DNA of 64,000 nucleotides, taken from contig JAAOMT010000366.1 in assembly GCA_016748015.1 (NCBI GenBank), positions 4,334 through 68,333 on the forward strand. The letters run 5' to 3'. The translations under genes were made by a program, and so were the position numbers. Origin of the DNA: Geosiphon pyriformis uo1. Taxonomy: Eukaryota; Fungi; Glomeromycota. Positions 7,628 to 59,150 of this stretch are shown piece after piece. The notes below the pieces were generated by a model. The model searched no databases. It saw only the letters and a program-made list of their open reading frames with translations, and was not told the origin of the DNA. Positions within the stretch are counted from its first letter, which is position 1. The number at the start of each line of letters is the position of its first letter.

Positions 7628-7649
7628 TGGTTATTAATAAGGAATCTTT

Positions 7650-14008: not shown

Positions 14009-14039
14009 CCAACAATTGACGGATAATCACTGCTCACCA

Positions 14040-14600: not shown

Positions 14601-14770
14601 AAAATGCACGAATTCAATAACTATCGCCCACTAGTAATTCGCAATTCAAAATTCGAATAACCAATGAATACGGAATAGAAAATCATGAACAATCGATCAT
14701 CAAATAACTGAATTAAATTTTAGAGTTAGGTGGTGAGGAATTGATAATTGTTAGTTTGTTATTTATGCCT

Positions 14771-14885
14771 TGCAAGAATAAAGAGTGGGAGGGGGGTAGT
14801 TTAAGATTTCTTACAAGAGTGAAGAGCGGGAGGAGGTAGTTTTAGTTTAAGATTTCTTACAAGAGTGAAGAGCGGGAGGGGGTAG
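14771..14885 (+). repeat. Purine-rich ~42-45-bp direct repeat (about 2.6 copies)
   Basis: tagtttaagatttcttacaagagtgaagagcgggagg is repeated, with a diverged first copy. Confidence 0.85.
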
Positions 14886-15135
14886 CCACATTTGTCAATT
14901 ATCTTTTCTATATCCATCTAGTCCAGGAATAAAACTTTATCAGTATATAACAAAGTTATCAGGGAAGGGTTTTTACAATGGCAAAATTGTTCACCCATTG
15001 CCAATTCTGATAAACTCTTGTTATTTACTGTTTATTGTTTAGGCCTATTGAAATCTAATTCAGAAATTTGAAATGATCGATATAAAATATTTAAGAAACC
15101 TAATGTATAATAAACTATTGTAATTAATATAAGTA

Positions 15136-15741: not shown

Positions 15742-16373
15742 TATTATAATAGTTCGGTAATAACTTTAAGAAATGCTAATATTAACTTAAGTCCAAGCAA
15801 TAATAACTTTATTTTAAACCACTTATCAAATATCCTTGAGACCTTTTTTACGCAAGTTCGGATTTAAATATTAAATTAGGTAATATTGAGCATGCTTAAT
15901 ATACTTGTTCACCGTGTAAAACGAAAACCCTCTGCCCTTGCTATCGAAATATATTAATTTGATCAGCACGAATAAAAAATTTTATGGTCAGTATTAATTC
16001 GGAAATATTTTTATATCCATAAGTTTAAATGAGAAAAATGTGAATGTTTAATTTTAATTAAAACCAGAATTTTAAATTGAAAAAAAAATTATTGGGATTT
16101 GGAAATTTACCTCAAATTAAATCCACGCTGAAATACTTTTCAATGAAGACAAAGCCAAAATAAAATTTTAATTTACTTCAATTTTTTGAACCTTTTCATT
16201 TAAAAATAGCGCAGCCTTAAATTTAGTTAAATAATTTGAATATTCATAAAAAATTTTTTTAAAAAAAAGGCAATAGACAATATATCTAAATAAATATTTT
16301 TTAGAAAAATTTAATTATTGGGATTAAATTTAATTTTAGTGTCATTATGTTTGATAGTAAAAAAAATGGCCAT

Positions 16374-21633: not shown

Positions 21634-21930
21634 TTTTTTCGTAAGTGTTTGAAGGGAAGATGTGCTAAGCGATGTGATGCTAATATACGAACTGATCAGT
21701 GGCTTGTGCCACTGTATGCAGAGTGTGACCAATGGTAATTGATGCGCAGAAACTGCGTTTGCATTAACATGACAAACAAAGTACATCTCTTTTAAGATTC
21801 AATAGAACGATTGCATGGAGGAAATACTCAGACCCAAAGCCATTGATTAGTAACCCTATATTTTGGTCGCTCTAGTGAAATCTATGCTACATATAATTGG
21901 TAATATTATTAACATATTTATCTTCACTTC

Positions 21931-25299: not shown

Positions 25300-28200
25300 T
25301 TGATATAAAATTATTTTATTATAAGCTCCAATAAATACATGGTCTAAAGTATAAAAAAATACTTTGAAGATAAATTGGCTTATTAAAGATTTATTAGCTT
25401 CTATTAACAGCAGAATTAATAGCAAAACAGCATTAAAAACATCAAAAAAAGGATAAAAATTCTTTAATAATACTGTATAGATTAATAATTTTAAAGAATA
25501 ATAATAATATGTTATTATTCAGATTTTTAACATAAAAAGTGAATTAAGTAATAAAAATAGTAGTATTTTTTAGTTAATAGTAATTATAACATAAATAATA
25601 AAAATAAAAACTATTTCAATTTTGTAATAAATACTTTCAGAGCAAAAAAAATCAATATTTATGTATTAAATAGTCTTTTTTTTGGTTTTTTGAACTTTAA
25701 TAATATAAATAAAGACACAAAAACTCTTTTTTTTCTATTTTTTTAATATTAATGTAAATGTTTTTGTTAAAAATTATTTACTTTAAACATTAATTTTTTG
25801 GCTGTTAATAAAAAATTTTTTCAGAAAAAATTAAAATTATTAAGAAAATTATTTTTAATATAATAATTTTAAAAGATTTTTATCTTTTCAAAATTTAGTA
25901 AAATTATTTATGCAATTTTTATATCTAAAAAGTTATAATAAAAGTATTAATTTTGGTAGATAAAAGTAATATTATAATAAATACTAATCATAGGATATCA
26001 ATAAACAATTATACAATTTAAACTGTAATCATAAAAAAATTTTTGTGAAATTATCTATTAAAATTATGTGTACTTTATTAATTAAGTTTAATAATATTAA
26101 GTCAATTAAAATATAATTAATAAAGCTATAACAGAAAGCTTTGATTGGATTTAAAAATATTAAACAAATTAATTAATTAATATTTAAATAATTTGTTTTT
26201 ATTGAAAAAAATATAATGTAAATAATAAAGGCCAATATAAATAAATTATTTAAAAATATTAAAAATACTAATAAAAATTTGGTTTATATTTTGTTAATAA
26301 AAATAACTAATTATAATTTGTAAGATTTTATTGTTTTAATTAAAAAAAAAATTTGCTATATTAATTATATTTTTATATTAAATATACTATTATTTGTTTT
26401 TAATTTAATAATAATTTCATAATATTATTAATTAAGTTTCCAATTATTAAAAGTATTTATTTGAATTAAATTTGAATAAATTCTTTTTTGTGCTTTTTAT
26501 GTAAAAAAATTGGTTATATTTTTTTAGTATACAATTAATTTAAAGTATTAGTTTTAAGATTTAAATTTTTTAAACTCTAATAAATTTAGATTTATAAATA
26601 TTTATGCTAAAAAATGAGTTTTAATTATTCAGTCAACTTTTTTAACAAAAAGTTTTAGATTCAAGTTGTTAATAATAATTAATTTACTATCTTCTAAAAT
26701 TTTTTTTAAGTAGTTTATTTATAACTAATACTAAATTTTTTTTTCTTTATATTAATTTTTCTGTAAAAATTTGTTTAAATAAGTTAAAACACTTATTAAA
26801 ACTTCTAACTAATTAAATGTCTACAATTTTTTGCAAGTTAGAATTTTTATTAATTTGGTTTTTTTGAGTTTTAAAAACAGCTAAATTTTTTTTAGTCTTA
26901 ATAATCTTAATATAATTTTAAATAGATTGATATTATTTTTTCTAATTTAACTTAATATTATAAATAATTGTTTGTTTTTAAATATTAATATTTCAAAAGT
27001 TTTTACAATTAAAATTGGCAATTTAAAAACATATATGTTGATTTTAAAAAATTTTATTAATTTAGTTTTGACAAGATTAAACTTTTTTTTTTGGTTTTAG
27101 TTTTTAATTTTTTTTCTTATTCAATAATTTATTTAATTTAGAAAATACAATATACAATATAAAAACATAAATGTTTTGTAAAACAAAATATAAATATATT
27201 TCTAAAATTTTGGAAATTTTGAATAAATCAAACTGTTTTTTTAAAACAATTTTTAGCTATAATTTTAAATCTATATGTAAACTTTTTTTATTATAAAATT
27301 AAATCAAATTTTTAGTATTCTGGTTTATTTGTAATTTAAAATTTAAATCTGTTTAACTTTTTATTGATTGTTTTATCATAAAATGCTTATGTGAAATAAT
27401 TTTAGAAATGTAAAAAAACTATAAACTTTATTTTTATTAGTAAATTTTTGTTAATTAAAATAGTTAATCAAAAATGTTTATAATATTTCTGAATTTTTTA
27501 ATATTTATTAATTTATATACTTTTTTAAATACTTTTTTTAATATAATATACAAACAAACTAATTAAGATTAATAAAAATATAAAATTAAAAATGCTAATA
27601 TTGTCAAATAAAAATGATTTAAGTATATGTTTCTGTTTAAAACAACAGATATAATTGAGATTTTTAATGAATTTAGAACAAATAATAATTTAAATATTAT
27701 ATAAAATCTTCTTAAAAGTGTTATATATTTATTAATTAATACAGTTTTGTCTTAATTTTGGTATAATAAATTTGAATATTTTTAAAACAAACTATTATTT
27801 AAGTATTATAATTTAAAATTTTTAATAAATAAACTTATTAAGACTTAAAAAATTTAAATTTTAACTAATTTTTACTATTATAAAAATTTTTAAAAAGTAA
27901 AAAAACATCTTAATTCTAGTTAGTAATGTTTAATAATATATTTTTAACCAACATTTTTTTGCTTTGTTTAAAATTACAAAAAAGTATAAAATATCTAAAT
28001 ATTATAAATTTAATATATTCAAAATAACAAATATTAATTCAATTATTAAAAAACAAATAAAAATTTTTATTATAAATAAAGTTTACATGATTAATAATAT
28101 ATTAGAATGGCTTTTAAGAAAAATTGTTTTAGATTATCTAATTGTAAAAGTAATATGATTTTTAAATGAAATCAAATAAAATTAAATATAAATAGTATCA

Positions 28201-28780
28201 TAAAAAGTTGGTTTAAAAAACAAATAATGTTAATTGATATTTTTTTTATTAATATATTTAATAATATAAATTATAAATTATGATTAAAAATCTACTGAAT
28301 AATAAAATTATTAATTTATTAAAAATCTCTAATAAACTTTAAAAACATTATAATAAATTTATATTAAAATTTTAATTGAATTTATTTAATTATTATCTAA
28401 TTATTAAATCTGTTTTTGATTTTAAAAAAATTTAAATGTTAATAATTTTCAAGTTTTATAAGTTAAATAGTATTTTTTATTAATATTTAACTAATTATTT
28501 TAATTAAAGTAATGAGAAAATATTGTTAAAAATAATATTTAATCAGATCTTATATGTATATAATAAGTTTGATATTTTTTAAGATAACAATTTTTTGGTA
28601 TTAAAAAGTATTTTTATTTAAACTTCTGTTTTTATAATAAATTTAATTATAAAAAACACTTTAAAAAAATTTTAAAATATAATTAGTTTTATAAATATGT
28701 ACAAAGTATACAATTTTGTAAATTGGCATTATTTAAAAAACAGTTCATTAAAAATAAAAATATATAAAGTTTTTGTATAC
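25300..28780 (+). mobile_element. Hypermutated LINE (ORF1, endonuclease, start of RT), 3'-truncated
   Basis: SIKI*LIKL*QKALI (about 26100-26145) and ILEWLLRKIVLDYLIV (about 28100-28145) match the minus-strand copy at 59-64 kb. NI*LIILIK (NTRPIAL-like, about 28482) and NMYKVYNFVNW (DxxKAYDSVxW-like, about 28694) are RT motif relics. Confidence 0.75.
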
Positions 28781-29020
28781 ATAATAGGTATTGCTTTGCT
28801 AAAGAGATAAATATAAGATTGTTTTAAAGCCAAATATTTTATTGATTAATAAAATCATATATAGTTCAAGAAATAGTTTCCATAACAACTATTTAATTTA
28901 AATTTTATTTTACTTTATGATTTTCATATTTGGATTTGAATTTATATACTCAAAAATATGATAATTTAACAAAGCAAAAGGCATCTATTTAATTAAATTA
29001 CATTGCTTATCCCAAAAAAA

Positions 29021-30318
29021 TCAATAATGGGATCTTATCATCATGTATCCAAAATAAGGTCCGAAATGGTCATTACCTTCATTAGTCGTAACTATTCGAC
29101 CGTCTTTTTTTCTGCGTTTATTACGACTTTTATTACAATCCTTGCAGATGTAAAAAAATTAAGAACGCATTAAATTTTAAAAATAGCGTTTAACACTGGA
29201 AAAGTTCTAAATTTCCTCACCGGATGTTCATTTAATGTTCCGACCTCAAAACATTTATAAACAGACGGAAACTTTATTGGTGGTTCTAAGTCAGAGGTTT
29301 TTGTGAAAAGAGGTGAGCATTCACATTGATCTTGAAATGGAATCCAGTATTCGCCACTCAATTGAAAATAGTCAATTGCTTTTCCATCAAAATTATAACC
29401 AAGTTTTGGAACACTTGGGGTAAAATCATCTCGGTACGTGACACGATAAAGCGTAATTTTAGTTGCTACAAATTCGACAAATTTCATATTTCCCATTTTT
29501 GGCTGGCCGAATGTGACAACTGTTGGTTTAACTGCATATTCAGAAGCAAATTCTAATGCTGCGTACACTGCTATTACTAAAAAATTTCATAATTTAAAAT
29601 ATGCATATGCAACAATATTCAATATTATAAATACAACTTACTACCCGCTCGCCCAAAACCAGTGAATGCAAAGTAATTCTTTTTAACATGAAAGTGAGGT
29701 TTTGATTTCAAGTATCTCATCTTGGTCCAAAATTTTTTTCTACCCTTTAACCATACATTAAAATGACTTTTATCTACTAAGGCCTCTTCTATTCTAGGAT
29801 AAGGAATCGAAATCGATTTTATCCTTTGCCAATGAATGTATCCCCTTTCTTTAGATTTGAAAGTCCATATTATTTGTTGATACGCTCCTGTGGTTGGCTT
29901 TAAACTTTCTGGCATTCCCACTGAAATTTAAAATTATCAAATTTGAATCGAAGCATTTTCAAATTTTCAAAATAAAATTTATTATTTTACCAAAAAAGCG
30001 GTCCCTTAGGCGATCGCTCTCATCTCCAAGAAGTGAAGCCTGTCTTGCATAGTAAGCATTATTAGCTAGCATCCCGAGGAGCTTTTGATCATCTACTAAA
30101 ACTTTTTGAAAGTTGGAATCTTCACCAATTTTGGATCTTTTTTGCTCTTTGGTAATGTTTAAGAAATCCTTTTTTAAGGGGCTGAGGTTTACATCTTTGA
30201 TTGGAAGATACTCGCGAAAGTTCTCTTCTCCTTTTGTATAAATTTCTGCTATGGAAACTATCACCATGTGAAATAGCTTCAAAATGAGTAACCAACAAAA
30301 GCTTGAAAGAATTTTCAT
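29021..30318 (-). CDS. Secreted class-3 lipase-like protein A, catalytic Ser replaced by Gly (360 aa, 4 exons)
   Basis: Exons 30318-29991, 29920-29642, 29576-29221 and 29140-29021 join in frame (1083 nt). Hydrophobic N-terminus; FTGFGRAG-IIAVYAALE; TFGQPKMGN; RVTYRDDFTP; DHFGPYFG. Confidence 0.9.
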
Positions 30319-31974
30319 TTTAAAACATGAATAAAAATTACTTCTTGGATATTGAACTTATCACTGTATTCTGGCTTCGATGATCTATTCCCCTATATGG
30401 TTTTAAATTCCCAAACGAAAATACACGTAATCTTTAGAATTGTCGACGATCGATTTGTCCTGATAAACAAAAAGAGAATCAAAGATAAGCACAGAGTAAC
30501 ATTGGGAACTTAGTATATCTTAAGCATTTAAAAAACCAATGCTTAAACTTTCAGGTGCCAGATTTACTTTCATTGTTCAGTTTTTATTTTTACCTAACGA
30601 GACAAATAAATATTCTCGAATCATTACACATTCTTCGTCGGTTATAATTTTACCAGCTTAGGTTTCACTGAGTAGATATGAGTATTTCGAAGCAAAAAAT
30701 GCTTACCAGTGTAACCCATATATTATTGAAATATCTGAACTTGTATATTTTTGAAAATTTCATCCCCTTCCCAAGCAGGCCAATACTTAAATTCATATAG
30801 ACAGCTTTGCTGTATTCGGCCACATGTGGTCGATATATAATAAAAATTTCTATTTAACTCAATCAGCCTATATGTTATTTTTGAATTCTTAAACAAACGA
30901 TATCAACTGGCCTTCAAGGAATATGGCTTAAATCCTTTAAAAATATCGACTTGGTTCTTTTACCATAGCCAGTTTTGTACACTAAATTTTGGATTAACAG
31001 GAGTTCATTCAGGATGCACTGAAAAAGTGAAAAAACGAGAGATTTCGCCAAATGAAGTCTAAATAAAGAGGTCTCTATCCACTATAGTAGACAGTAATAA
31101 CTGTTGCCATAGCAATAAATGTAAATTAAACGGCTTTGATAAATATATAAAATAGCTAATAGATAGAAAACCAATATGTTGTAGATTTTCAAATATTTTT
31201 ACAAAATATATGAATTTTGAATATAATACAAAGGCTTAGAAATTTTTTTAAAGTATTTCGTTCTTTTATTAAATTTGGTTTGAAAGTGAATTTGACATGT
31301 CAAAATTTCGTAGAGAAAAATTTTACCGAAAAACAGTATTTCCTTGATCAAATATATAATGCTTATAAACATTTACAAACTGTGTTCGACGTCAATTTCC
31401 AAGATATAACAATTAATAATGAGCGAGCTTTTGGTCTTAAATTTTATCATCTCGTTTCAACTTGATAAAGAATCATAAAAGCAAACAATTTATTTTGTTT
31501 TTCTACATTCTGAAATTACTTCATTTATTTCAATTTTGAAAATTCTTAAAAGATTTTCCTCATATTCAGAATAGGTTTTAGATTTTTTATATACTATTGT
31601 CGGAAAGCCGCATAAGTAAGCTTAAATTATTCAATATCCTCATTAAGTATCCATGAGATATGCTTATATATCAGAGTGTGCTTTTAACAAATTAGCTAAA
31701 AATGTACATCCATTATCTTAAAAATCTCTAGCTTGATTTTAACTGTTATCTATCTTCATCCCATTAATATATTCAACAGTGTGAAAATTTCTCCAATAAA
31801 TGGTTGTTTAAATATAAAGAAATTCAGATTTTTCTATTCAGCGAGAGAGAAAATTCGGAATCTAAAAGCAAATTTCAAGAAATAAAAAAACTTGGCCTAA
31901 TTATGAATCAAGTAAATGAAAAAGCACTCTAAAGGAAGATTAAGAAGTCAATTGACTTTAGCTTCAATATTATC

Positions 31975-35650: not shown

Positions 35651-36113
35651 ATATTTAATTCATATATATTTAATTCACTCACTGCTAAGCATTTTTGCTT
35701 TGAAATACTTATATCTATTCACTGAAAATTAAGCTGATAAAATTGGAACCGACGAAGAATTTGTAATGCTTCAATAATATTTATCATGATTCGAGAATAT
35801 TTATTTATCTCGTTAGGTAAAAATAAAAACTTATCAATGAAGGTTTTTCATATTTTAAGCATTGGTTTTTAAATGCTAAAGGTATACTAAGTCCCCAAAT
35901 TTTATTCTGTGCTTATCTTGGTTTGTCAGGAAAAATCGATGGTCGACGATTAAAAAGATTACGTGTATTTTCATTTGGAAAATTTAACATCTGACGAAAA
36001 TATTTTGCTATTTTGATTAATAGACCTAAACTATATAAGGGAATAGATTATCGATGTTAGGTAACAGTAATAAGTTCAATATCCAAGAAAGTCATTTTTA
36101 TTCATGTTTCAAA

Positions 36114-37415
36114 ATGAAAATTCTTTCAAGTTTTTGGTGGTTGCTCATTTTGAAGCCTTTTTACATGGTGATAGTTTCCATAGCAGAAATTGATACAAAA
36201 CGAGAAGCGAACTTTCGCGAGTATCTTCCAATCAAATATGTAAACCTCAGCCCCTCCAAAAAGGATTTCTTAAACATTACCAAACGGTAAAAAAGATCCA
36301 ATATTGATGCAGACTTCAACTTTCAAAAAGTTTTAGTAGGTGATCAAGGGCTCCTCGGGATGCTAGCTAATAATGCTTACTACGCAAGACAGGCTGCATG
36401 TCTTGGAGATGAGAGCGAGCGCCTATCGACGCGCTTTTTTAGTAAAATAACAAATTTTATTTCGAAAATTTGAAAATGCATCAATATTTATATTTGGATA
36501 ATTTAAAATTTCAGTGGGAATGCCAGAAAGTTTAAATCCAACCACAGGAGCGTATCAACAAATAATATGGACTTTCAAATCTATTGAAAGGGGATACAAT
36601 CATTGGAAAATGGAAAAATCGACCTTAATTGCTTATCCTAGAATAGAAGAGGCTTTGGTAGATAAAAGTCATTTTAATACATGGTAAAAGGGTAGAAAAT
36701 TTTTTTGGGTCAAGATGAGATACCTGAAATTAATACCTGACTTCCATATTATTAAAAACTATTTTACATTCACTGGTTTTGGGCGAGCGGGTAGTAAGTT
36801 GTATTTATAATATTGAATATTGTTGCATATGCATGTTTTAAATTGTGAAATTTTTTAGTAATAGCGGTATGCGCAGCATTAGAAATTGCTTCTGAATATG
36901 CAGTTAAACCAACAGTTGTCACATTCGGCCAGCCAAAAATGGGAAATATGAAATTTGCCCAATTTGTGGCAACTAAAATAACGCTTTATCGTGTCACGTA
37001 CCGAGATGATTTTACCCCAAGTGTTCCAAAATTTGGTTATAATTTTGATGGAAAAGCAATTGAATATTTTCAATTTAGTAGTGAATATTGGATTCCATTT
37101 CAAGATCAATGTGAATGCTCACCTCTTTTCACAAAAACCTCTGACTTAGGACCACCAATAAAGTTTCCGTCTGTTTATAATGTTTTGAGGTTGGAACATT
37201 AAATGAACATCCGGTGAGGAAATTTAGAACTTTTCCAGTGTTAAACGCTATTTTTAAAATTTAATGCGTTCTTAAATTTTTTTTATATCTGCAAGGATTG
37301 TAATAAAAATCGTAATAAACGCAGAAAAAAAGACGGTCGAATAGTTACGACTAATGAGGGTAATGATCATTTCGGACCTTATTTTGGATATATGATAGGA
37401 ATATGCCCCTCATAA
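36114..37415 (+). pseudogene. Lipase-like B: inverted duplicate of gene A, disrupted
   Basis: Colinear with A including introns and about 400 bp of upstream sequence. Stops at 36288-90 (CAA>TAA) and 36685-87 (TTA>TAA), and a 1-nt deletion near 37178. Has GFGRAG. Confidence 0.92.
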
Positions 37416-40199
37416 CCATTTGATATTTAAGATTATTAGAAAGCTATTATTAATGCAATATACAGTATTTTGTAAGAAGCATCTCAAAATCTTAAAACCT
37501 CAATTTTCTAATTTATTCAGGATAAAAATATGGTCTTAAGATAAACATTGATTCTGTATATCTTTTATTTTGATAAGAAAACATTGTAGAATGCTTTCTA
37601 TAGTATCTCTCATTTTGAGAAAGATTTTTTGGCATTGGAATATATTATTGAATTTTTGAGATAAGCAATGTAATTTAATTAACTAGATGCCTTTTGCTTT
37701 ATTTTTAGTTTCAACTTTGGTAAATTTTCACATTTTCAAGTTCCAGCTTTGGGAATCTTTTACAACATTAATTTTGTTAATTATTAATTTTTTCATTTTT
37801 AAAGATATTTTTCGAAGAACAATATTTAATTTAAAAATATAATTTAATATCACAAACTCATTTATTTTTTTTATAAAAATTTTTAAGAACTGATTCTAAA
37901 GTTTCCCGTCAAAACAAATTACATTGAAAAAATTTAACTTGAAAGTTATATGTAAAAATTTTAAGCTTTACTAATAAATAATCTCTGGTTATTAATTTAG
38001 TAAAAAATTTAAGGCAAAGAGATTAAACTCCGAAAAACAAATATATTAAAAAAGCTTAATTATGAAAGAAATTACTAGAAATATCCTTAAAATCTCAAAA
38101 TGGATAATTCATTCGTTCCAATAAGTATATCAGCTTCAAGATATTTATACACACTTGAAACCTTGAAATTGGTCTCGTTTATGTAACTAATACGATAAAG
38201 TAAGGCATTTTATTTAATCTTAAGTCAACAATTTCATGTTTAAGTTAAAAATAATTATTAAGAACTTTTTCTTTAATGAATAAATAGATGTTTAAAACAT
38301 AAATATTTCTAAGCTAATATTATAATAAATTTTTTACATTGGAAATTCTATTAAATCTGAAAGAGATAGGTTGATATTTCATTCTTTATATAATAAATAT
38401 TTTAATTAATGATTATATTAAATATTGTTTACTAAAATTTGATTTCATTAAAGGCTAATAAAAAATGATCAGAATAATTAATTTGTTACAGTTACCATTA
38501 TCAATTTAATAATTAATAATTATAATGAACCTTATAACTTTTTAGGATAAACGAAAGATTACTATCTTATGATGTTTAGAACTACTGATCATAAATAATT
38601 CTAAAATATTTTATTACCCATAATTGTGCAATAATCAATAATGTTCAAAATTGTTTTCAGACAAGTTTCTCAATCTCTCAGGATAAAATTATATCACTGT
38701 TTCTAAATTTTACTCCATGTTTTCAAATGTTAAAAGAAAAAGGTCAAATATAATAAAAAATAACTCTTTAAATTTAGAGTTTCGATGAATGCAGTCTTAT
38801 GACATTATTACACATTAAAATTTTGATTAATTTCTTCAAGCCAGCCGAGAGGTGAAGTAACGTTTTAATTGATGAAGTCGTTGACATATTTTTCAAATTA
38901 TACAAAGAGGCTATCGCAGAAAGGAAATCTAGTGAGAGTTCTTGACCTCATGAAGCATAGCAGATTTTATTTGGGCATTTCTCTGGTGATCGCAATGAGC
39001 CTCCTGAACAGAATCCTAATTACATTTTTCATTTATGTAATCATAAATCACAAGTATATTATTTGAAATCAAAAAAAAAGAGCTGATTTAAAATGGATTG
39101 ATAGAATTAGAATTTAAATAAGTCACTTAAAATAAAATAAAATTTAATGAAATTTGTTTTTAATTTAGTTTCATTTTTGATATTTCAAAAATATTTAATT
39201 TAAAATTAATATTCATTAAAATTTTTTTAATTTGACATATTAAATAATTGACAAAATTGATTTTTGCTTAATAATTAAAAATAATAAACATACTTCAATT
39301 ATTACGTCAAAATTTAAAAAAAAACATTGGCTTTATTTAAATAAAAAAACCAAATTAAAATATCAAAAAAAATTAAAAGTGGTGGTCGCAACCTGTGGTA
39401 TCAACACGAGAGACACCATAATGACAATTAGTGATGCTTTTCCCTTTGGCCTGCTTAGTTATTTTGGAAAACGAGGGAGGTCGGGTATATTATCACACGT
39501 GAGTTATTATTTTGGGCGTCGGTTGGTAAGTAATGACGGTGGTGTAAAAGTGGTTAGTTTTGCATAGTGTTGCCTTGACGAAAGTCCGGGTGACTGTTCA
39601 CGGTTGAAAACGCATGATCCACGTTTATAGTTACTTTGTAGCTAATGTAGATAGTAGAAGGACCTCACTTAGTTAAAGCATTTTAAAATAATAACAATAA
39701 ATGATTTCCCTTTTAAGATATTTTATTTTTTAAATTTTTAAAACTTATTTCCGAAATAATAGTAAAATAAAAAGTATTATGAATTAAATATCGAGTTTAT
39801 AAACATTAATTATTTATAAACATTTAATAATTTTCATCATATTAGAAATCACATATATAAATGTCATACTTTGCCGTATTTTTATTTTTTGATAAGTTCA
39901 TATTTTATCAAGAAAAAAAATTCATAAATAAATTTTGTTCTATACTCTTTTTTAATAAAAATTTTAAATTTTTCATGATAACTTCTTGTTTTGAATATTT
40001 TATTTAAAATTTGGTGTACTATAATTCAATATTTAATTGTTATATTTTAATGATATAATTTCAATAGTTAGAAATTGAAATTTTTGAAAAGTAAAAAATT
40101 AAATGTAAGCTATGGTAATTCAAAACTTTGATTGTTTTAATTAAATTAATTTGAATAGTTATTACGACCAATTGAAAATATATTAAAAAAATATTCTGA

Positions 40200-42930: not shown

Positions 42931-44400
42931 TCAATTTCCCCTAACACTTCTTTCCACCTTATAACCAAAATAAGGACCATAGTGATCTTCAATATTTCGA
43001 ACATTTCTATTCTCTCCCCTTCTACCATTAGATCCAGCGTTGCAATTCTTTAATGCAACAAAAAATTGATCATTGATAAATAAAAAATAAAGATATGTGT
43101 CCTATATTTCATAAAATAAATTGAAAAGCTTACTTGATTCTCTTCAAAGCTTCCAATCCGGAAACATTCATAAACAATTGGAAAAACTTGTTGAGATTTT
43201 GTCAGTTGTTTACAACTACAATCTTTATCATAGGGTATCCAATATTCTCGACTTAATTGATAATATTCGACACTTATTTTATTATCATATAAACCCCATT
43301 TAGGCCATGCTGGTACCCAATCATCCCCATGTGTAACTCGATATACATCTAATTGACTATCAACAAACTCAACGAAATTCTTATTTCCCATTCGTGGTAA
43401 GCCGAATGTCACTACTTTTGGCTTTGTAGTCAGTTCAAAACTTTTAGCAAACTCCAATGCGGCAAATATTGCAAAAACTAAAAAATAATTTTTTAATAAA
43501 TAAAATTTTCAAAATTTGACTTAATATTAAAAAATACGTTTTTCTCACCACCCCCTCTTCCAAAAGCTGTAAAGGTAAATAAATCTTTCACATTTGAAAA
43601 ACCTGGATCCTCGAGAAGGTATCTCATTTTTCCCCAGAAAACATCACGTGCTTCTATCCATTTACGGTAATATAGATTTTCAACGTATACATTAGGAATT
43701 CCTGAACTGTAAGCAACTGCAACACCAGTGTTTACTTTACGATTACTGTAAACACTGGAAGTTCCTTTGAATTTGATTATTAGATATTTTTCATTGCTTG
43801 CAGAAGTGGTGAATGAAAAAAGAGTTTCTGGAAGACTGGCTTTCAAAGAAATTAAATAATACGATGAAAGATTATAATAATTTTTTTGAAGATTTTTAAG
43901 GGAATGAGTTTAATCTTTTTTATCTTACCAAAGGTTAACCTTATCAGTCTATCAGCATTGCCTTTTAAATAAGTTGCTTCATAAGCTTCCTTTGCATGGG
44001 TTGCTAGCAAGTTTAATTTCTCAGGAGATTCTACAAGAATTTGTTTATCCTTTGATTCAGCTAAATTTCTTTTGACCCTTTTATGGTTGTATTCTCTTTG
44101 CAGAGGTTCTTGTAGCCTTTTTATGAATTCTAATAGAGTTTTATTATATTGAGTATCAGAAGAGAATTTTTCTTTTTGATTTGCTTGTAAGTGTTGAAAA
44201 AAATTCTTTTTAAAAGCAAGGTTAATTGATTTTCTTGAGATATCTTTTTTACGTTTGAAACATGATTTTAAACCACTTTCTGAAGAATACCGTAATAAAT
44301 CAGAGGGTCGAAAGAATATTTGAATTTCTACTAGATTTTGGAAAAATTTTATGAATATTACGAATAAAAAAATCCAAAATAAAAATTTGTTTTTGGGCAT
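42931..44400 (-). CDS. Class-3 lipase-like protein C, catalytic Ser replaced by Gly (407 aa, 4 exons)
   Basis: Exons 44400-43929, 43839-43549, 43477-43134 and 43047-42931 join in frame (1224 nt). Hydrophobic N-terminus; long pro-region ending KRVKR; FKGT; FTAFGRGG-VFAIFAALE; TFGLPRMGN; HGDDWVP; DHYGPYFG. Confidence 0.9.
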
Positions 44401-44793
44401 GATAATTTTCTGAGGTCACTTTTTCGAAATAAAAATAAGAATAAGAACCTTAAAACTAAGTTGAGTTAAATAAAAATTAAATTCATGAGACTTATCATTT
44501 TGAATAATTTTTAAATATATGAAAAATAATTCAACATAATAAAAGTTGAATTAGATTTGCCTTTTTTGTGTTATCTGAAACTAAATACACCACTACTGGT
44601 GGGCAAATATTAGATTAAAACGCTGATTCTATTATTAGTATGGTTGTTGGTTACATGAATTTATATAATATTTGTTTAAAACAATAATTTACATAATAAA
44701 TGTTGATGAAAAAATCAAAAAAAAAATTTCTTATTTTGTGTGATATAACTTTTTTGTTGTTGCAAACTTTCAATTCGAAATACAAAATGAAAA

Positions 44794-44835
<42 letters not shown>

Positions 44836-45111
44836 TCCTATTTATTCTTCAAAAGTTTCTAAACAAGATTTTTCATAAAAATTAATTTGTCATGTTTTTT
44901 AGAAGGAATAATTTTTATCTTTTGTATATCAATCCCAAATTCTTACAAGCTACTTTTTTATATATTTCCTAGCTCAATCTTTGCGTTTTAAATAAAGGTG
45001 GCAAAGAATCAATCTCAAAAATTCCAAGTATAAAAAACGAAAAGTTCTTTACAATTTTTTGTTTAATACTCTTGAAAATATCATTTATTAGATACTGCAA
45101 GTCAAATAAAT

Positions 45112-46434
45112 TCAAAGTATTATTGTACGCTTTGCCCAATATTTGTCTTGTCGCATCACATATCCGAAATATGGCCCTTGATGTTCACTACTATTCTCTT
45201 TTAATAGATCATGATTAAATTGATTATTACAAAGCTTGAGGAAAAAAGAAACAATTAATTCTCCAATATAAAAAATTTCAAAAAAACTATTTACAATATT
45301 GGAGAAAACACACACCGAGCTTGGAAGAATACTCCCAACTTTTTCACATTTAAACACCAAAGGAAAAGAGATTGATCGATTTTCATCCAAACTTGGCCCA
45401 CAATTGCAATCTTTCTCCTCTGGGATCCAATATTCCGTAGCCAATGGCAAGTATTCATCAATAACCTTTCTCTTATCATCTATTACAGAGACTGGGTATT
45501 TAGGAACAAAATCTGCTCGATAAGTCACCCTGTATACGTTTAACATTAAGTTAGCATATTCAGCAAAAGCCTTGTTTCCAATTTGAGGTTGCCCAAAAGT
45601 TATTACTTTCGGTCTAGTATTATATGCTAAGGCATATTCAAGAGCCGCGTATACTGCCAAAACTGAATTTTTATAAATATTTCTGTGAAAATTAATAATA
45701 CCTTTTTCAAAAAATAGAATGAATTATTGGGATAAATTAATTACCTCCACCCTGACTGTAACCAGTGAATGTATAATGAGGTCTCCTTGATGTGAATTTG
45801 TTTTGAAGTTCAAAAGCGTTTATTTCATTTAAAAATATTGGACTTAGTGTTTTCCAAATAGTATTTAAAGTAGCTTCAACCTTAGCACCTTCTACATCTG
45901 AATATGGAACAGATGGCGAATTTTTCCGTAAAATGGGCCATGAGTAGTAATTAACCTCAAAACTACCAAATCCTATGGCTACATCTGGTCGCTTATCATT
46001 ATCATCTGAGATTATGAAAAAATTTCCTGAGATAAAAGTTTTTATTAATGTTTTGGGTGATATTATTGCTACAATGCTACTAATAGAAGTTTTCATGACT
46101 TACCCCAAGACCATCTTGATCCGAAATTGTGAATATTCCCTTGATGAAGCACAGATTTCTGAGAGAAATGGGCATGTAATGCAAGCATGTCTAAGGTTTG
46201 TTGATCTGTAACTAGAACCTTGTTGTCAGATTCATTTTTTTTGAAGAGTTTTTTTTCACTTTGTCCAAATTTTTTTCGAGTTTCACTGTTAGGGAATCTT
46301 TGTATCCTCCACCGAATCAAAAAACTTAATAATAAAGTAATCGATATAAAAGCAAGTAAAAAGAATAGCAATTTATGCCTTTGAAATTTAATAGAATTTC
46401 TATGAATTGAAGCCTCCTGCCGTTGTTGCTTCAT
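45112..46434 (-). CDS. Class-3 lipase D with intact Ser-Asp-His triad and N-terminal signal anchor (360 aa, 4 exons)
   Basis: Exons 46434-46104, 46026-45745, 45662-45316 and 45234-45112 join in frame (1083 nt). FTGYSQGG-VLAVYAALE; TFGQPQIGN; YRADFVP; EHQGPYFG; hydrophobic segment at residues 22-40. Confidence 0.9.
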
Positions 46435-47620: not shown

Positions 47621-49240
47621 CAATAGTTTATGATAAAGTTTCTTTTGCAAATTTTCAGACTATTTTTCTCTATTTATTTTTGTATTCTTGAATAATTATC
47701 ATTTTTTTATCATTGATCAGTTTTCATAACTTCTGATTAAAACAGAGAATGTAGTTTTTTGTGTTGCAAAAAATATTTCCATTTTATTCAAAACAATGTT
47801 AGACAAATTCTGTATAATTATAATTCAGATTAATTATTTGGATAAAACTAATAAAAAAAGTATCCAAAACCATTTTTGAATTTAGGACAAAAGTAATTTC
47901 AAAAGTAACTTTTGTAAACAACTTTTTTAAAAAAATAGTGACCATAGATTGGTGAATTATTGTAATCAGTTCCACATTTCTCTTTTACTCTCAAAAAATG
48001 ATTGAAATTTTACAAAAAAAAATCAATTCTCTTATATAAATGCATATTGGTGTTGACTTTGTCAATATATTATTATTGATTTCCCTAAAAATGCAAATCT
48101 TTCGAATTACATTATTTAGCCAAGGTGCAAAATCAATTCAAATAAAGACTTTATTTTGTTTTCACACGTTGGATTCTTAATTGGATAAAATCCCAAATAT
48201 CAATCAAAAAACTAAATGGTTTAAAAGACAATAAAATAAAGGCCACATATTGTCATTGATTACAAATTTTTTATTTTGCCAAAATTCCTCAATTTTCGCA
48301 TTAAAATTTTTTGTTTAATATTTACAACCACAAATTGTAATCAGAGATTGAGATAGACTCATATTTATAATATCAACTCCTTTATAAATTTATTAGGCTT
48401 TTTTCTTATCAATCTTTTGTAAATATACTCGGTGGAATAAAGTTACCAAACACTTTATTAGTTTTACAATTACTATAGATGAAAACTAAAATTTGAAATC
48501 TTGTAGGCCGCATTCTTATTCCTAATTAAGTTTTTATACGTTTGTCTATTAATTGCTTCCCATTCTTTTTTTGAACATCATAAAAAGTTTGCAAAGCTTT
48601 TATGTTTGTGATCCTATTTTCGAACACCTCATTCCAACTTATCTCATAAATGCTCAATTGAGTTGAGATCTGGGGATTATGCGTATTAATTTGGAAGTAG
48701 TTTGAAAATCGGATTTTTAGTTTACCGGCATTATAAATCAAAGCATTGTTTTATTGAAAAAATGAATATCAATCTTGAGATACAAGGCTATATTTTGCTT
48801 TTCAAGAAGTTTTATATAGCCAAATTGATAAAGTTTTCTTTCGATTGATACAAAAAACTCTACACCAATGATTAAATTTTATTTAAGAACAATTTTTTGG
48901 TTCTTGAATCAAAGCATTTTATTACCAACTTTAAATACTAGAATATTTATTTAACCTTTGGTAAAATCCAATCAATTATTAAAGTAATTAAAAATATTAG
49001 TTAAAAATATTACTATAACGCTAATACACAATTAATATTAAAGAGGATATACAGTATCATTTCGTTTTGAGGAGTTCTATTAAATTTTATTTTAACGCTG
49101 ATTATTAAGAGCTAGATAACTATGTAAAGAGTCCTAATTTCCATTATATTAATTTAAAGTATGTAAGTCAGAGGTGCCGACGATAATTTTAATGAGATGG
49201 TCGAAAAAAGAGAATTTTCTAAAAGAACAGTCTGCAGATT

Positions 49241-49372
49241 TTACATGATTGAGCATTGACCAGTGCCACTGCCATCGTCTGGGTCACCAGTTGGTCCTTT
49301 AATTGAGCCGTTTCCAGGAGCGATAATTGAGAGAGGATTAAAGGAGGACTGATTGTTAGTTGTTGGTTGCAT
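49241..49372 (-). CDS. 43-aa CaaX-terminated peptide; candidate lipopeptide (a-factor-like) pheromone precursor
   Basis: ATG-to-TAA, 132 nt: MQPTTNNQSSFNPLSIIAPGNGSIKGPTGDPDDGSGTGQCSIM*. The GC-richer patch coincides with the ORF; A-rich start context (taaacaaaATG); TATAAAA about 110 nt upstream. Confidence 0.65.
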   Translation of the reverse strand: MQPTTNNQSSFNPLSIIAPGNGSIKGPTGDPDDGSGTGQCSIM

Positions 49373-49481
49373 TTTGTTTAAGTTATTTGATTAATTTAAA
49401 TTTGAGTGTTTCGTTTCTTTTCCTTTTCTTTTAATTCTTTTGGATGGATTGAATAAAAATAAATTGGAAAGGCACGACCAG

Positions 49482-49670
49482 TTTTATAGAAAAAGATATG
49501 ATTAGAAACAATATCAATTGAAGCAGAATGTTAAAAAAGTCAAATCATTATTCCATTTAATCATAAATTTTGATAGACACATTGTTAAAGTTATGCTAAC
49601 AATGTCTTGAAAACATATCAGCTTTTAAATTTAATTACCAGTTTAAAAAGGCAAGTGGTAAGTCATTGTT
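49482..49670 (-). promoter_or_regulatory. Putative promoter of the CaaX peptide gene: TATA box plus four AACAAT (HMG-box-like) sites
   Basis: TATAAAA on the minus strand at 49482-88; AACAAT/ATTGTT at 49507, 49581, 49598 and 49665. Confidence 0.35.
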
Positions 49671-50649
49671 CTTTGCATTAAAATATATTTTATGAATTTA
49701 AAATGCCGTAAACAGGTTTTCTTTAAAAGATGGTGTTACAGTTGTACAAAGAATACTTGTTTATTCACGGACAATATTAAAAACTTAAAATTTCAATTAT
49801 TCCAATTTCTAAATTTAACTCTATGTTAATCAGTATTATATGCAAGAAAATAATTACTAGGATGCAAAATACCTTTAAATTCAAGATTGTGAACAAGGAT
49901 CTTTTTTAAACCTTTTCGAAAGCAAAATATACTTCGTTTATTTAGTACAAGTATCGATCAATCCATGAACGAATACTTTTCAATTTTAGAATTAATTTTA
50001 ATTTGATATGAAAAAAAATTAGAATTTTTAAGCAATAAAATTTTATAAAATTATATTTTTAAATGGATCCTTGCTAACAATGCATTTACATAATATTGTT
50101 AGCCCTTCCTGTATTAATTATATGGATGTCTAATTTTTTATTTCATTATTTCGTATTTTATTATTTTTAATTTCCTATTCTTTTAACACCTTATTTGAAT
50201 ACTTGCTAATTAATGTTGCCAATGCAACGTGCTAAAGGATGAAACAATTTAACCGAATATAAATAATTTAATATTTTTTCAAAAATTCTTTATTTTAATT
50301 CTTCTCTATTTCTCAAGAAAACAGAAAACCTTCAATTAAAATGAACAATATAGATGTTATATCAGTTCACAAATAGACATTGTTTAAAATTTTACATGAC
50401 GCTATAAATAACCTGAAATTTAAATACTTTCAAGATGCTATCAAACTAAGATTTTCGGTCTAATTTATTCATTTAGAAAATTCATTTAAAGCATTATCAG
50501 TTTCAATAATCAGGTTTATTTTCTTATTCTATTTTATTCATTAAGAGCTTTAGAATATATACATTTATTCTTTGAATAATAATTTTTGGGTAGTTTTTTA
50601 CTCTATAAAATTGTTATTTTTATCAAGTTCTTAATCTTTAATTTAATAA

Positions 50650-51992: not shown

Positions 51993-52179
51993 ATACATTC
52001 ATTTTTATCATCATATAAAAACGGCTAAATTGTTAGGAAAGTAATGGCCCTTCCGAAAGAAGCCGACATAAGTGTTATTTTTGTTTACTCCTGATGTCCT
52101 ACAATCTCTTATCTATTTCCTTTGATACTCATTCTTTCTATCTACTTATTTTTCCACTTGCCTAATGCATCTCAACTCC

Positions 52180-53010
52180 ATAAAATCGAACCGTGAGGTT
52201 GTTATGTACTTTTGGGGCAACTTTCACCGCAATGCAACTGAAATCGCAAAATTAACTGTTGTTTCCCCGCGCTCCTGTGAACGTTGCGTCGCTCTACTTT
52301 AGAAAAAGACCAAATTCCGGATATTAATCGTCCTGGCCGCCCACACAAACTTATTTCTCCCAAATTGTCGCCAGATTGACAAAATCTTCCACACCAATCA
52401 TTTAGTTACAGCAGCCGAAATCAAAGCATGGCTCTAAGAATTAAATACCAGCTTCGAAGTTGGTGAAAAAACTATCCGAGACGAGATTTTAAGGCTTCGT
52501 TACACTCCCATTCAGCCTAAAGATGTCTCTTCTCGCCGAGAACCGTTTGCAATGGGCACATAACTATTGCCTTTACAATTGGCACAAAATTATATTCTCT
52601 GATAAAACAATTTTGCAGATGTTACGAAACAACTGTTTGGCATGGACAATCTATAGCACGAATGGTAAAAGATCCATTCAAGCTGCATGTTTGGGCGGCG
52701 ATCAGCGAAGATGCAAGATCAGTTTTCACATTTTCACAGAGAATTTAGAATGTCATATCTATTGTGAAATCTTCACTTTTATGACAATGCAATCACAATA
52801 AATGGTCATAAATTGGTATTCCGGCAATATAATTACCCGAAACACATTTCTCATCATGTATGTAAAAAAGTAAAAGGAATGGTAACAAAAAAAAGGTGTT
52901 TCAGGAGATTTTTATAAAAGAAATCTTCAAGAAGAGTTGTTACTAATATTTGTATATCTGCCTATATTCAAGCTTGTATAAATGCAGAAGGATATCATAT
53001 TAATATTAGT
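52180..53010 (+). mobile_element. Degenerate Tc1-like transposase
   Basis: NATEIAKLT...RPGRPHKL, RLQWAHNY...WHKIIFSDKT and RQYNYPKHIS (QQDNDPKHTS-like); frameshifted. Confidence 0.8.
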
Positions 53011-53279: not shown

Positions 53280-54613
53280 ATGAAATTTCTTTTAAGTTTT
53301 TGGTATTTAATCATTTTGAAGTTATTTCATATAAGGATAATTTTCATACCAAACTTTAAAACAATACCAGACGCAAACTTTTCCGAATATTTTTCAACCA
53401 AAGAGATAAATCTCAGCTCTCAAAAGGATTCTTTAAACATTACTAAACAGCAAAAAAGGTCTATATTCGTTCCAGATCCAAACTTTCAAAAAATTTTAGT
53501 TAAAGATCAAGACCTTCTCAGGATGCTAGCCAATAATGCTTACTATGCAAGACAAGCTGCATGTCTCAAAGATAATAGCGAGCGTCTAACGTTGCGCTTT
53601 TTTGGTGAAATAACAATTTTCTTTTTTGAAAAGTTAAAATGTATAAATGTTATACTTAACAACTTTAAATTTTAGTGGGAATGCCAAAAAGTTAAAACCC
53701 AACTCCAAAACCATATGAGCAAGTAATTCTGACGTTCCAATCTCAAGAAAGAGTATATGTTAATTGGAAATCGCAAAAATCAGATTCGATTCCTTATCCT
53801 AATATAAAAGATGCCTTAGTAGATGGATATCATTTTCAAATATGGTTAAGGTCCAAAGAAATTTTTTGGAAAAAGATGAAAAATTTGAACTTGAGATTCA
53901 AATCTGGTTTCCACTTTGCTAAAAAATATTTTACATTCACTGGTTTCGGGAGAGCGGGTAGTAAGTTATTAATTATAAAATTAATATTATGTTTTGTTTA
54001 CTGTATATGCATTTTTTTTAAAAGAAAATTTTATTTTAGTAATTGCAGTATATGCAGCATTAGAGTTTGGTAATGCAAATAGAATTAAGCCAACAGTTGT
54101 CACATTTGGCCAGCCACGAATGGGAAATAGGAAATTTGTCGAATTTGTAGCAACTCAAATTACTCTTTATCGTGTCACATACCGTGATGATTATACTCCA
54201 AGTCTTCCAACATATGGTTATACTTCAAATAGAATTGCAGTTGAATATTTGCCATTAAGTGGCGAATATTGGATTCCATTTCAAGACCAATGTGAATGCT
54301 CTCCTCTTTTCCCAGAAGCTTCTCATATAAATCAGAAAATAAATTTTCCATCTGTATATAAATGTTATCAAGTTGGGACATTAAATGCACATCCGGTGAG
54401 TAGATTTTTGAGAACTGAGGTGTCTCTAAAATTTATTAGCTTAAATTTTTTTGTTTTTATACTTGTAAGGATTGTAATGGAAATTGGATACAACGCACAA
54501 GAAGTGAACATCGAACGACAAAAAAAAAGGAAAATGATGACCATTTCGGACCCTATTTTGGATACATGATGGGAAAATGCCCTTCAGAATCAACTGATAT
54601 TAGTACATTGTAA
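53280..54613 (+). pseudogene. Lipase-like E (GFGRAG type) with a single premature stop
   Basis: Exons 53280-53604, 53676-53960, 54040-54395 and 54470-54613 stay in frame. The only lesion found is TAA at 53693-95, where A and B have TTA. RDDYTP and DHFGPYFGYMMGKCP are retained. Confidence 0.85.
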
Positions 54614-54999: not shown

Positions 55000-57900
55000 A
55001 TCAATTAATTAATTATTAATTAAATCTTAAATTAATTTTAAATTATAAAATATTTTTTATTATTTGTTAACTAAAAATAATTTCATTTAAAAAGCTATAA
55101 AATTATAAAGAATTTATGACAAACCAATTATTATAATATTAGAAATTTAAAAAAAACTGATGTTTTAATTTACTTGTATAAAAATATTATTACAAACAAA
55201 ATTTTCACATAATAAATTGGAGTAATTAATTTCATATTATTTCAATTATGTATAAGCTATTATTGTTATATATTTTAGCTATTCTATTTTTAAAATTAAT
55301 TGTTAACTTGTTTATTTAATTTAATTATATGGTTTTTATTAATTTTATAAGCCAAATTTTTAAACTTATTTCATCTTATTTATTATTTAATTATATAAAA
55401 CTTCAATTAAAATATAAGTTTATTCAGATTTTTTACAATAATACTTTTGAATTTGATTTTATTAATTAAATTGTTTATATATTCAATTTTATTTTTTTAT
55501 TTTATATTGTATTTGGTTAATTTTTTGCTATTTTTTTCTAATTGTTAATATAATGACTAATTATACAACATTAGTGTTTAATGATAATAAAATATTGAAC
55601 ACAATATTATTCTTTTCAAAAAATTTAAGCTTTGATAAAATAAAATTTTTAAATTTTTTTATTAAATTCTATCCTTTTTTTTAATTTATTAACTCTAAAT
55701 TTGTAATTTAAAATAAAATAATTTATTCCTTTATAAAATCGTTAAATTTCAAAATGATCAATTAAATTTTTGAAATTGTTTTCTTTTGAAACTTTATAAT
55801 ATTAATAAATTTGTATTGTTTTCTATATAAAAGCTTTTTAGCAATAAGTAATTTTTAATTGTAATAAAAGATAAAAACATTTTGATAGTTTTATATTTAT
55901 TTAGAAATTTGTTATTTTATTGTCAATTTGTTATATTTTGTAATATTTTATTAAAATTAATAACAAAGTAAATTTCAATTGTATTTGGTATTATAATATT
56001 TTATTTAATTATTATTTAAATTTTAAAATTATTTTTTTTAGTAATTATAAAGATTGGTAAAAGTTTTTGTTAAGTAAATTGTTTTTTACGTTAAATAAAA
56101 ATACTTTTATTTTAAAATTTAAGCTTTTTAATTATGTTTGTTTTTTTGTTGTTATTTTTTAATTAATATTAATAGTATTATAACAATAAATAACCAGTTA
56201 AGTAATTTATAATAATTTTAATTGTGTTTTATAAACAAATTAATTAGTGAAAATATTTTATATTAATTTTATAATATATTATTACAGATTAAAACAATAT
56301 TTTGAAAAACTTTTTTTAAATAATAATTTTTTAAATATTTATATAACATATAATTTTTTTTATATTTAAAATTGGCTTTTAAAACAGTATATTTATTAAT
56401 TGTATAAGCTTTTTTATTTTAAATTTAGACAAATTAGAAAAAATATTTTTTGGTAATAAAAATATTTATTTCAAATTTTTAAATACACAATTGTGTTTTT
56501 TAAATTAATAATTAATTTAAAAAAATAAATATATGTTTTATTTAATAATAATATTTAATTAATACTAAAATTTAAAGTACTTTAAAATTTTACTTTAATT
56601 AAAAAAATCTATTTATTCTTGATTTTTTGTATAAATTTAGGTTTTATGTTAATAAATAAATAATGCTTTAAATAAATAAAACAAATATTTTTTATTTTTT
56701 ATTTAATATGTAAAGCTCAATTATTATTTAATATAATATAATTATAATATAAGTCCAAAATTAAATATAACTTATATATTTTTTAAATATATTCAAACAC
56801 AATTTTAATTCAGATTAAATTACATTAATTTTAAAAAAAAAACATATTTTAAAAAGATATTTTGTGTATATATATTATTAAAATACTACTATTTTAAATT
56901 ATTTTACTTAATTATTTAATAAATAAAATTTAATTGCTAATTAGTACATAAAAACAGATTAAATGTTTTTAAATAAATACAAATTATGTATTTTTTACAT
57001 ATAACTAGTTTTTTAGACCAATTAAAACAATATTACATAATTATATACACTATTTTATTTCTGTTTAAATTTAAAAAAACATGATTTATATAAACCAAAA
57101 TTAATTGCAAAAACTTTAATAATATCAAACATATAAATTATTCTGTTTAAAAATATAATAAAATATTATTATTATTTATTAATTTAATTTTTTCTATTGT
57201 TGTTTTAAATTTAAATCTGTATAGCCAAATTTTATTTTTGTAATATGTAATTAATAAATAAATAAAAATTATTAAAATTTTATCTACTTTTTTTGTTTTT
57301 TTAAAAACCAAAACAGTTTTATTATATTAATTCTTTAAAATTATGTTTTTGTAAAAAACATTATATAGATTATTATTAAAAATACTAAAAATATTTATGA
57401 ATATTTTTATTTATTAAACATGCAAAAACATGATTAAATAATTTTATTTTAATGTAATACAAATATTAAATACTTAAATAAAGCTTGTTATAAATTTGTT
57501 TTTTGATTATTATTAATAATTTTATATAAATAGCTTTTATTAAATATGTATATAAGTTAACTAAAAGCTTATTTGTAAATTAAAAAGCATGTAAAATCAA
57601 AATATTATATCTTTAATATATAAATTTCAATTTATATTTTAAATAAATAAACTGTTTACTATTTTTAAACTAAAATTAAATTTTTAATAAATATATTGTA
57701 TTAATTTATATATATTTTTAATAAAATACTAAAAATTTCAAAAATAATATAATTATTTACCAAAATATACTGCTTTTATAAAGACACAAAAAAACACAGA
57801 ATAAAAAAACCACTTTATTTACAAACATATTTGTTTTCTTGTTCTTTTCAATTTTAAAATATTTTTTAATTTTAAACCAAATAATTAAAATATTTTTATT

Positions 57901-59150
57901 ATTTAACAAATTGGCTATATGTTGTTTTTTAATTCAATAATAATAATAAAAGTCAGATATAATCAAAAAATTTTTAGCACTATAAATATTTAAATTATTT
58001 AATTATTAAAATAAATTATTACTATATTAAAAATTAATATATTAAAAAACTAAAACTATAATCTGTAATTTACTTAGTATTAATAAAATTAGATTTTAAA
58101 TACTAATTTTTATTTTAAATTTAATTTAGCAAAATAAGCTGTCATATTATAAACAATCTTTGGTAAATTTAATTTTTTAATAATTTATATATAAAAACAT
58201 TTATAATATTAAAATTTACTTTATGTAATTTTTTTTGTAATAATCTAAAATCATTTAAACTGCAAACATCTTACAAAAAAAGTCAAAAACTACACAAAAA
58301 AAACTATAACAAAGGTATTTATATGTATAAATTTAGTAATTAATTTAAAGCAATAAAATATAAAGTCTTTTAAATCTAATTTTTTTTATTTGTAAAATAT
58401 TTTTTAATTAATAAAATTGTTTTTTTTTTATAAAAATTTGTTTTTAAGAGCTATTTTAAACTGTTTTAACAAATAAACTACTTCATAATAGAATAATATA
58501 TTTAAAATATTAAACATTGAAAATTTATTAGAGTTACAAAAAACATTAAATTATTTTTTAATTTATACTTATTTAAACAATTTTAAGTTATATAAAAAAA
58601 TATAAGACTTTAATTAATAAGTTTTCAAACAAATTAGTTTTAAGTTTTAATTTTTTTTTTTGATTATAATATTTTATTTATAATGAATACTTTTTAAAAT
58701 AAAACTAAACTAAAAGATTTATTTAATAATAAACTACAAAATAACTACTACTAAATACATAAATTATTTATATTAAATTGTTTTTTTAATACCAAATTTA
58801 AAAAAAATTTAATATTTAAGTAAATTTTAGCCAAACTAAATTTTAAAAAACTTTTAAAAATAAAAAAATATTTAAATATTTATAAAATTTCCTCTTTTTT
58901 GCAATAAAAATTGGTAAATTACTATTAAATAAAATAATTTTTTTAATATTTTAATTGATTAAAATAGCTAATGTTTTATTATTATTAATTAAAATATTAT
59001 TAATATTAAAAAATTTGTTTGTAATTTTAAAATATATTAAATAAAAAATTAGTTAATTATTATTTAATTAAATTATTTTTTTTATTACTATTTTAATAAG
59101 TAAAGTTCAATTGTTATCTAATACATAAAACAAAACTAAATGGTTTAAAC
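55000..59150. repeat. Extremely AT-rich decayed repeat tract, family not assignable
   Basis: Almost no CpG, no ORFs, same compositional texture as the decodable LINE relics. Confidence 0.45.

Follow-up and report, generated by a model that had tools for sequence, protein, structure and literature searches.

The analysed window, a 64-kb stretch from Geosiphon pyriformis, carries an open reading frame (ORF) of 132 nt on the minus strand, running from ATG at 49372 to TAA at 49243–49241. Its presence and translation agree exactly with an earlier sequence-only reading, in which the strand was left unstated; on the plus strand, positions 49241–49372 are interrupted by stops. The GC content of the ORF is 45 per cent compared with 24 per cent window-wide, which places it at the 98th percentile among 132-nt segments. 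AAA lies immediately 5' of the ATG, and there is an in-frame stop upstream. The GC-richer patch, the A-rich leader and the upstream TATA box described in that reading are all present. The features of the locus are as follows.

49241–49372, minus strand: coding sequence of a candidate lipopeptide pheromone precursor; single exon, 43 aa plus TAA.
49244–49255, minus strand: CaaX box C-S-I-M, directly 5' of the stop; CSIM-stop in 18 of 18 Geosiphon copies.
49253–49309, minus strand: G22–C40, longest candidate mature peptide; predicted boundaries.
49310–49312, minus strand: Asn21, putative N-terminal processing site; invariant in the alignments.
49373–49470, minus strand: A-rich 5' leader region, alignable among the Geosiphon copies.
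49483–49488, minus strand: TATA box TATAAA at −116; 100 per cent conserved in the promoter alignment.
49508–49512, plus strand: ACAAT box 1 (−140), HMG/M-box-like; unchanged throughout the aligned Geosiphon copies.
49581–49585, minus strand: ACAAT box 2 (−213), AACAATG; 97 per cent conserved.
49599–49603, plus strand: ACAAT box 3 (−231), AACAATG; 88 per cent conserved.
49665–49669, minus strand: ACAAT box 4 (−297), AACAATG; 95 per cent conserved.
48871–49934, minus strand: duplicated cassette of about 1 kb (promoter, gene and 3' region); 74–81 per cent identical (blastn) to the closest copy subfamily, without terminal repeats.

About 2.8 kb without long ORFs flanks the gene on either side, and its neighbourhood consists of class 3 lipase genes, kinases and Sel1 repeats. 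There are at least five intron-containing class 3 lipase genes (29029–30698, 35692–37703, 43050–46434 and 53280–54584), with PF01764 on both ORFs scanned and an inverted pair about 90 per cent identical. A kinase gene (Pkinase/RIO-like) with an N-terminal coiled-coil ORF forms a patch of 40 per cent GC at 19448–21786 and resembles the expanded fungal FunK1/CRN-like kinases. The Sel1-repeat ORF at 6107–8979 (108-nt unit) lies downstream of kinase-like exons, the whole being probably a tyrosine-kinase-like plus Sel1 gene.

The window also contains repeats. GC-richer tandem arrays occupy 14038–14663, together with 13699–13884 and 14769–14885 (40-nt unit × 15.8, 68-nt × 2.8 and 46-nt × 2). At 15134–15743, inverted repeats of 44 nt starting TACAGAGGGTG lie 522 nt apart, like those of a mariner-type MITE. 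The GC-richer broken ORFs at 52165–52801 look by eye like the relic of a Tc1/mariner transposase; Pfam returned only sub-threshold, unrelated matches for them. The segments 26000–29000 and 55000–59000 have a GC content of only 10–12 per cent and are likely to be heavily mutated repeats.

The ORF at 49372–49241 is the only strict CaaX ORF of 30–70 aa within the window, and block shuffles yield 0.08 such ORFs per 64 kb by chance. Taken singly, without its family, it is modestly above chance, which is suggestive only. The peptide matches, however, the N-termini of several 'hypothetical proteins' annotated in the Geosiphon assembly GCA_016748015.1. Read as DNA, these and related loci give 18 copies on six named contigs and the window, namely 16 distinct ones from the window together with the six loci read first, and two more. 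The true number is at least 18, as the annotated proteins P0010, P0011 and P0014 point to more. Some copies are in tandem (six at one contig end) and others are single. All 18 are single-exon genes with 43 uninterrupted codons ending in C-S-I-M-TAA; 14 encode an identical peptide despite a DNA divergence of 8–12 per cent, and the other four are variants. Two of these are located at L003:7772–7903 and L011:10001–10132. One of the two, possibly relaxed, combines six dispersed changes with a weaker promoter box; the other has an Asn-rich tail like that of Ambispora and could represent a second specificity.

The family is also found in Ambispora leptoticha (five copies, all on one 18-kb contig) and Ambispora gerdemannii (at least two copies). 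The seven Ambispora homologues end in CVIM (five copies), CVIV and CIIW. The CIIW copy, a divergent gene of 39 aa in A. leptoticha (L007:14447–14566) with a deletion of three residues after the Asn, is possibly in decay or prenylated in another way. In total, the CaaX-stop is kept in 25 of 25 copies from three species, with X being Met in 23, Val in one and Trp in one. The conserved CaaX terminus, mostly with Met as X, supports the CaaX reading made from the sequence of the window.

Selection on the coding sequence is strongly purifying. Each of 11 paralogues is separated from the window copy by 10–16 synonymous and no non-synonymous changes, and the variable columns among these copies number 2, 0 and 29 at codon positions 1, 2 and 3. 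A codon model for 17 Geosiphon copies gives an omega of 0.073 (lnL −573.8 compared with −636.1 at omega 1; likelihood ratio about 125), rising to 0.137 once the Ambispora copies are added. Paralogues under purifying selection that keep the CaaX box, which the sequence-only reading had proposed to look for, are thus present. As the 18 Geosiphon and seven Ambispora copies keep the start, frame, CaaX and stop at this low dN/dS, the ORF is well beyond chance. That it is a real gene is practically certain, and the 'Glomeromycota-like lineage' to which the small gene had been assigned is indeed a member of the Glomeromycota, G. pyriformis.

The same data bear on the idea that the ORF was carried along by a non-autonomous transposon, or arose by chance and was multiplied by segmental duplication. 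Dispersed and tandem copies in a repeated 1-kb cassette, in a repeat-rich genome, are what such an origin would produce, and the cassette of the window is bracketed by one 31-nt inverted repeat. This repeat, however, has only 24 matches in 31, a score that 17.5 per cent of random pairs reach, and the other copies lack it. The cassettes share no terminal inverted repeats, the conservation with Ambispora does not extend beyond the ORF and the context of its start, and an omega of 0.07 argues against a transposable element fragment, a possibility also raised in the sequence-only reading. We consider this origin barely credible.

Every public gene model of the family splices the ORF, and in all copies a G|T spans the last codon and the stop, within a donor-like GT-R-A. 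The ORF could accordingly be exon 1 of longer spliced proteins, with the apparent CaaX-stop merely read into an intron. This GT is, however, forced by any Met-stop or Trp-stop junction. Splicing in the public models starts from no fewer than three different GT sites, and the tails to which it leads are unrelated (lipase, kinase, kelch-like or short junk). In tblastx comparisons of the 1.5 kb after the stop, a sense match was obtained in 6 of 91 pairs, compared with 76 pairs inside the ORF; the six are close relatives or overlapping sequence, nearly all with stops. Close copies have 3' regions interrupted by stops in frame and by frame-breaking indels (1, 5, 10 and 11 nt), and distant copies cease to be similar at the stop codon or just past it. 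The earlier reading had allowed for a last exon of a larger gene; our comparison, made on the regions after the stop only, found no conserved coding second exon 3' of the stop. A spliced product is highly improbable, and the public models of the family are apparently artefacts, judging from these alignments. In two further pheromone-like copies (P0009 and P0011), they fuse the gene wrongly to lipase genes.

Two profile searches retrieved matches in Geosiphon and Ambispora only. No homologue was found in Rhizophagus or in other Glomerales and Diversisporales by a search that would miss short unannotated genes. The missing homologues beyond Geosiphon and Ambispora are weak evidence of absence, because such genes reach protein databases only if mis-modelled. 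Among metagenomes, a pattern scan gave 216 matches, none confirmed, and a DNA-pattern scan gave 21, all chance when translated. Pfam, PDB, ESM Atlas and Rfam gave no usable match; in particular, the Pfam profiles, including those of yeast MFA and basidiomycete pheromones, hit no family for 10 members at E-values up to 10. An EGF-repeat protein of Acropora (P0012) and two other weak long matches were taken as low-complexity, and a bacterial ABC exporter clustered with P0001 has no similarity to it and was set aside as a database artefact. No published description of such a gene was found in a search outside which most of the subscription literature fell.

The promoters of the family share a characteristic organization. 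Each of the 18 Geosiphon copies has TATAAA between −103 and −122, and an unbiased word count identified AACAATG/ACAATG as the most enriched word. As homologous promoters would count twice, the enrichment was measured in seven promoters whose pairwise alignment scores are at the shuffle baseline. In this set, ACAAT occurs 33 times (13.3 expected), AACAAT 20 times (5.2) and ACAATG 13 times (2.2), each with P = 0.0005 in 2000 shuffles; these are the top 5- and 6-mers. The enrichment of ACAAT is significant in the Ambispora promoters alone, and the ACAAT words are commoner than in 17 control upstream regions (P about 1e−4). When 16 Geosiphon promoters are aligned, conservation is 95 per cent in the window copy's four ACAAT cores compared with 69 per cent for the remainder (P = 1e−4), and nearly all highly conserved 5-mers overlap these cores. 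A Geosiphon copy added after the enrichment test has four ACAAT boxes too. A second enriched word, TACATG/CATGTA(C), occurs between −400 and −100 in 5 of 11 family promoters and is absent from the proximal promoter of the window copy.

ACAAT is recognized by HMG-box proteins generally, and HMG genes are numerous in these fungi. The boxes observed upstream of the family are putative targets of an HMG-box factor; they went unremarked in the sequence-only reading but lend support to its interpretation. Known HMG-box sites include the form A/T-AACAAT (PMC3036917). In Schizosaccharomyces pombe, the HMG protein Mat1-Mc binds an M-box that lies upstream of a Ste11 box in the promoters of the M-factor genes mfm1–3, and ACAAT is seen at the M-box position in the published promoter table (PMC1693924). 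Several short CaaX precursor genes with ACAAT-containing promoters are therefore common to both systems, whereas the adjacent Ste11 box of S. pombe (AACAAAG) is absent in Geosiphon, ACAAAG being essentially missing between −110 and −350.

The precursor has the anatomy of a prenylated peptide. A hydropathy scan (9-residue maximum 1.19) reveals strongly polar first residues and no hydrophobic N-terminal signal, in line with the precursors to which the sequence-only reading compared the peptide. Fifteen residues are invariant across the aligned copies: M1, N6, Q8, S9, F11, N12, I17, N21, G26, P27, T28, D30, Q39, C40 and I42. Farnesylation is favoured by a terminal Met, and a polar residue after the Cys occurs in fungal precursors (PMC3068285). 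The product is very probably prenylated. The same reading had placed the cleavage at a Pro and DD layout; this part of it did not hold, as one Geosiphon variant and the Ambispora homologues have ND or AD in place of DD. The proposed mature peptide of seven residues is therefore doubtful, and the invariant Asn21 appears the better cleavage candidate. At 19 residues, the peptide released by the predicted cut would exceed known mature pheromones (about 9–15 aa) in both length and polarity.

In the a-factor pathway of yeast, the CaaX Cys is farnesylated, aaX is removed, the peptide is methylated and exported by Ste6, and it is received by Ste3; the N-terminus is cut at T7|A8 by Ste24 and at N21|Y22 by Axl1/Ste23 (PMC2134810, PMC2148179). 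The Geosiphon family has in common with Saccharomyces cerevisiae MFA1/MFA2 a short precursor, the lack of a signal peptide, a terminal CaaX and redundant genes, and with a-factor also Thr5, Asn21 and Ile24 at equal positions (PMC2134810). There is, however, no significant sequence match to a-factor, and 12 residues follow Asn21 in yeast compared with 19 in Geosiphon. The a-factor is hydrophobic and encoded by two genes in Dikarya, whereas the Geosiphon peptide is acidic, Gly-rich and encoded by at least 18 copies outside Dikarya. Yeast a-factor also starts with MQP and has I-K-G-x3-D-P at matching numbering and spacing. The MQP start and the alignment at Asn21, with no Pfam match, are a lead only.

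The precursors of other fungi provide further comparisons. Mushroom pheromone-like precursors also have about 40 aa, are missed by annotation and are rich in Gly, Ser and Asn before the Cys (PMC8305134, PMC8545103), whereas the Geosiphon family has no MDS/AF start, no conserved ER/DR-type charged pair and, at the loci examined, no STE3 linkage. The mushroom genes are multi-allelic, and the Geosiphon paralogues nearly identical. Trichoderma HPP1 (h-type, C-polar-a-X) has a polar residue after the Cys and a terminal Met favouring farnesylation (PMC3068285), but is built of repeated motifs with Kex2 sites, the Geosiphon peptide being one unit. Signal peptide, repeated units and KR sites characterize the alpha-type, KEX2-processed repeat proteins (PMC6339444); none of these features was found in the window peptide. 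The trisporoid pheromones of Mucorales share a phylum-level neighbourhood and HMG-box control of mating, but are carotenoid-derived and not peptides (PMC3834313). The family resembles known pheromone precursors in its size, in being multi-copy and in having escaped automatic annotation. By these analogies it would probably work like the class-a lipopeptide pheromone precursors, although it belongs to no named sequence family.

A prenylated peptide may alternatively stay in the cell. An intracellular microprotein, membrane-anchored and largely uncut, for example an adaptor or regulator, would explain why all 43 residues are strongly conserved, including the part that a pheromone would discard, and the copy number would reflect a need for abundance. 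The polar, acidic C-terminal half, without a conserved charged pair of the basidiomycete type, is also compatible with such a role. On the other hand, identity over the whole length is found in pheromone paralogues too (two identical MFA1 copies). The variation between species is greatest in about ten residues preceding Q-C while the N-terminal half is kept, a pattern expected of receptor-specific ligands, and the M-box-like promoter also argues against an intracellular function, which we regard as unlikely.

The lipopeptide could also leave the cell by the pheromone export route and be aimed at another organism (the Nostoc endosymbiont, a plant host or competing fungi), with no fungal Ste3 involved. 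The unusually many Geosiphon copies suggest a high output, and they sit amid expansions of lipase, kinase and Sel1 genes. The family is, however, kept in Ambispora, which is not known to have a Nostoc symbiosis. The codon model gives no sign of diversifying selection among the paralogues, and an orphan Ste3 exists in the lineage (PMC3834313). A signal between organisms is quite improbable, more so than an intracellular microprotein.

In Rhizophagus/Glomus, Halary et al. reported one STE3 copy and STE6 and found no a- or alpha-factor gene, a failure that they put down to short length and divergence (PMC3834313). In two coexisting Rhizophagus isolates, HMG-box genes were induced and pheromone genes were not identified (PMC7490403). 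No STE3 was found among the called genes within 10 kb of any copy examined or among the scanned ORFs of the window; the gene is not in a P/R-type locus. At the loci examined, no second, mating-type-specific allele was found.

We favour, as the probable explanation, that the gene encodes the precursor of a farnesylated a-factor-type signal, exported and acting on a Ste3 receptor. An HMG-box factor would turn on all copies jointly. Cys40 would be modified by farnesyltransferase, SIM taken off by Rce1/Ste24 and the new end methylated by Ste14. The N-terminal part would be removed, possibly after Asn21, by a protease of the Axl1/Ste23 type. A Ste6-type ABC transporter would then export the lipopeptide, which would activate the Ste3 GPCR and MAPK cascade of a neighbouring hypha or germling. 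Dosage, rather than allelic diversity, would be served by having so many near-identical copies.

The response to this lipopeptide could be either mating or vegetative recognition and fusion. The Gly/Ser/Asn-rich tail is like that of the non-mating-type pheromone-like peptides of mushrooms (PMC8305134), so a role in vegetative signalling is plausible. A role in mating can be put forward only tentatively. The same reserve applies to the broader proposal, towards which we lean slightly less than away, that cryptic mating in Glomeromycota makes use of this farnesylated Ste3 ligand under HMG control, which would be the first pheromone of peptide nature outside Dikarya.

Sex in Glomeromycota has never been observed and is a long-standing open question; a receptor and an exporter were reported in 2013, and the ligand gene was missing. 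The family provides a concrete sequence that can be synthesized and tested on Ste3, and it offers a candidate link from the expanded HMG-box genes of these fungi to a specific target. The gene pattern (short ORF, CaaX-stop, TATA box and ACAAT cluster) may be used to seek equivalents in Rhizophagus and Gigaspora. If the proposal is true, the whole a-factor system, with its ligand, M-box control, exporter and receptor, would predate the split between Mucoromycota and Dikarya, and a chemical handle would be available for inducing sex in fungi of the arbuscular-mycorrhizal type.
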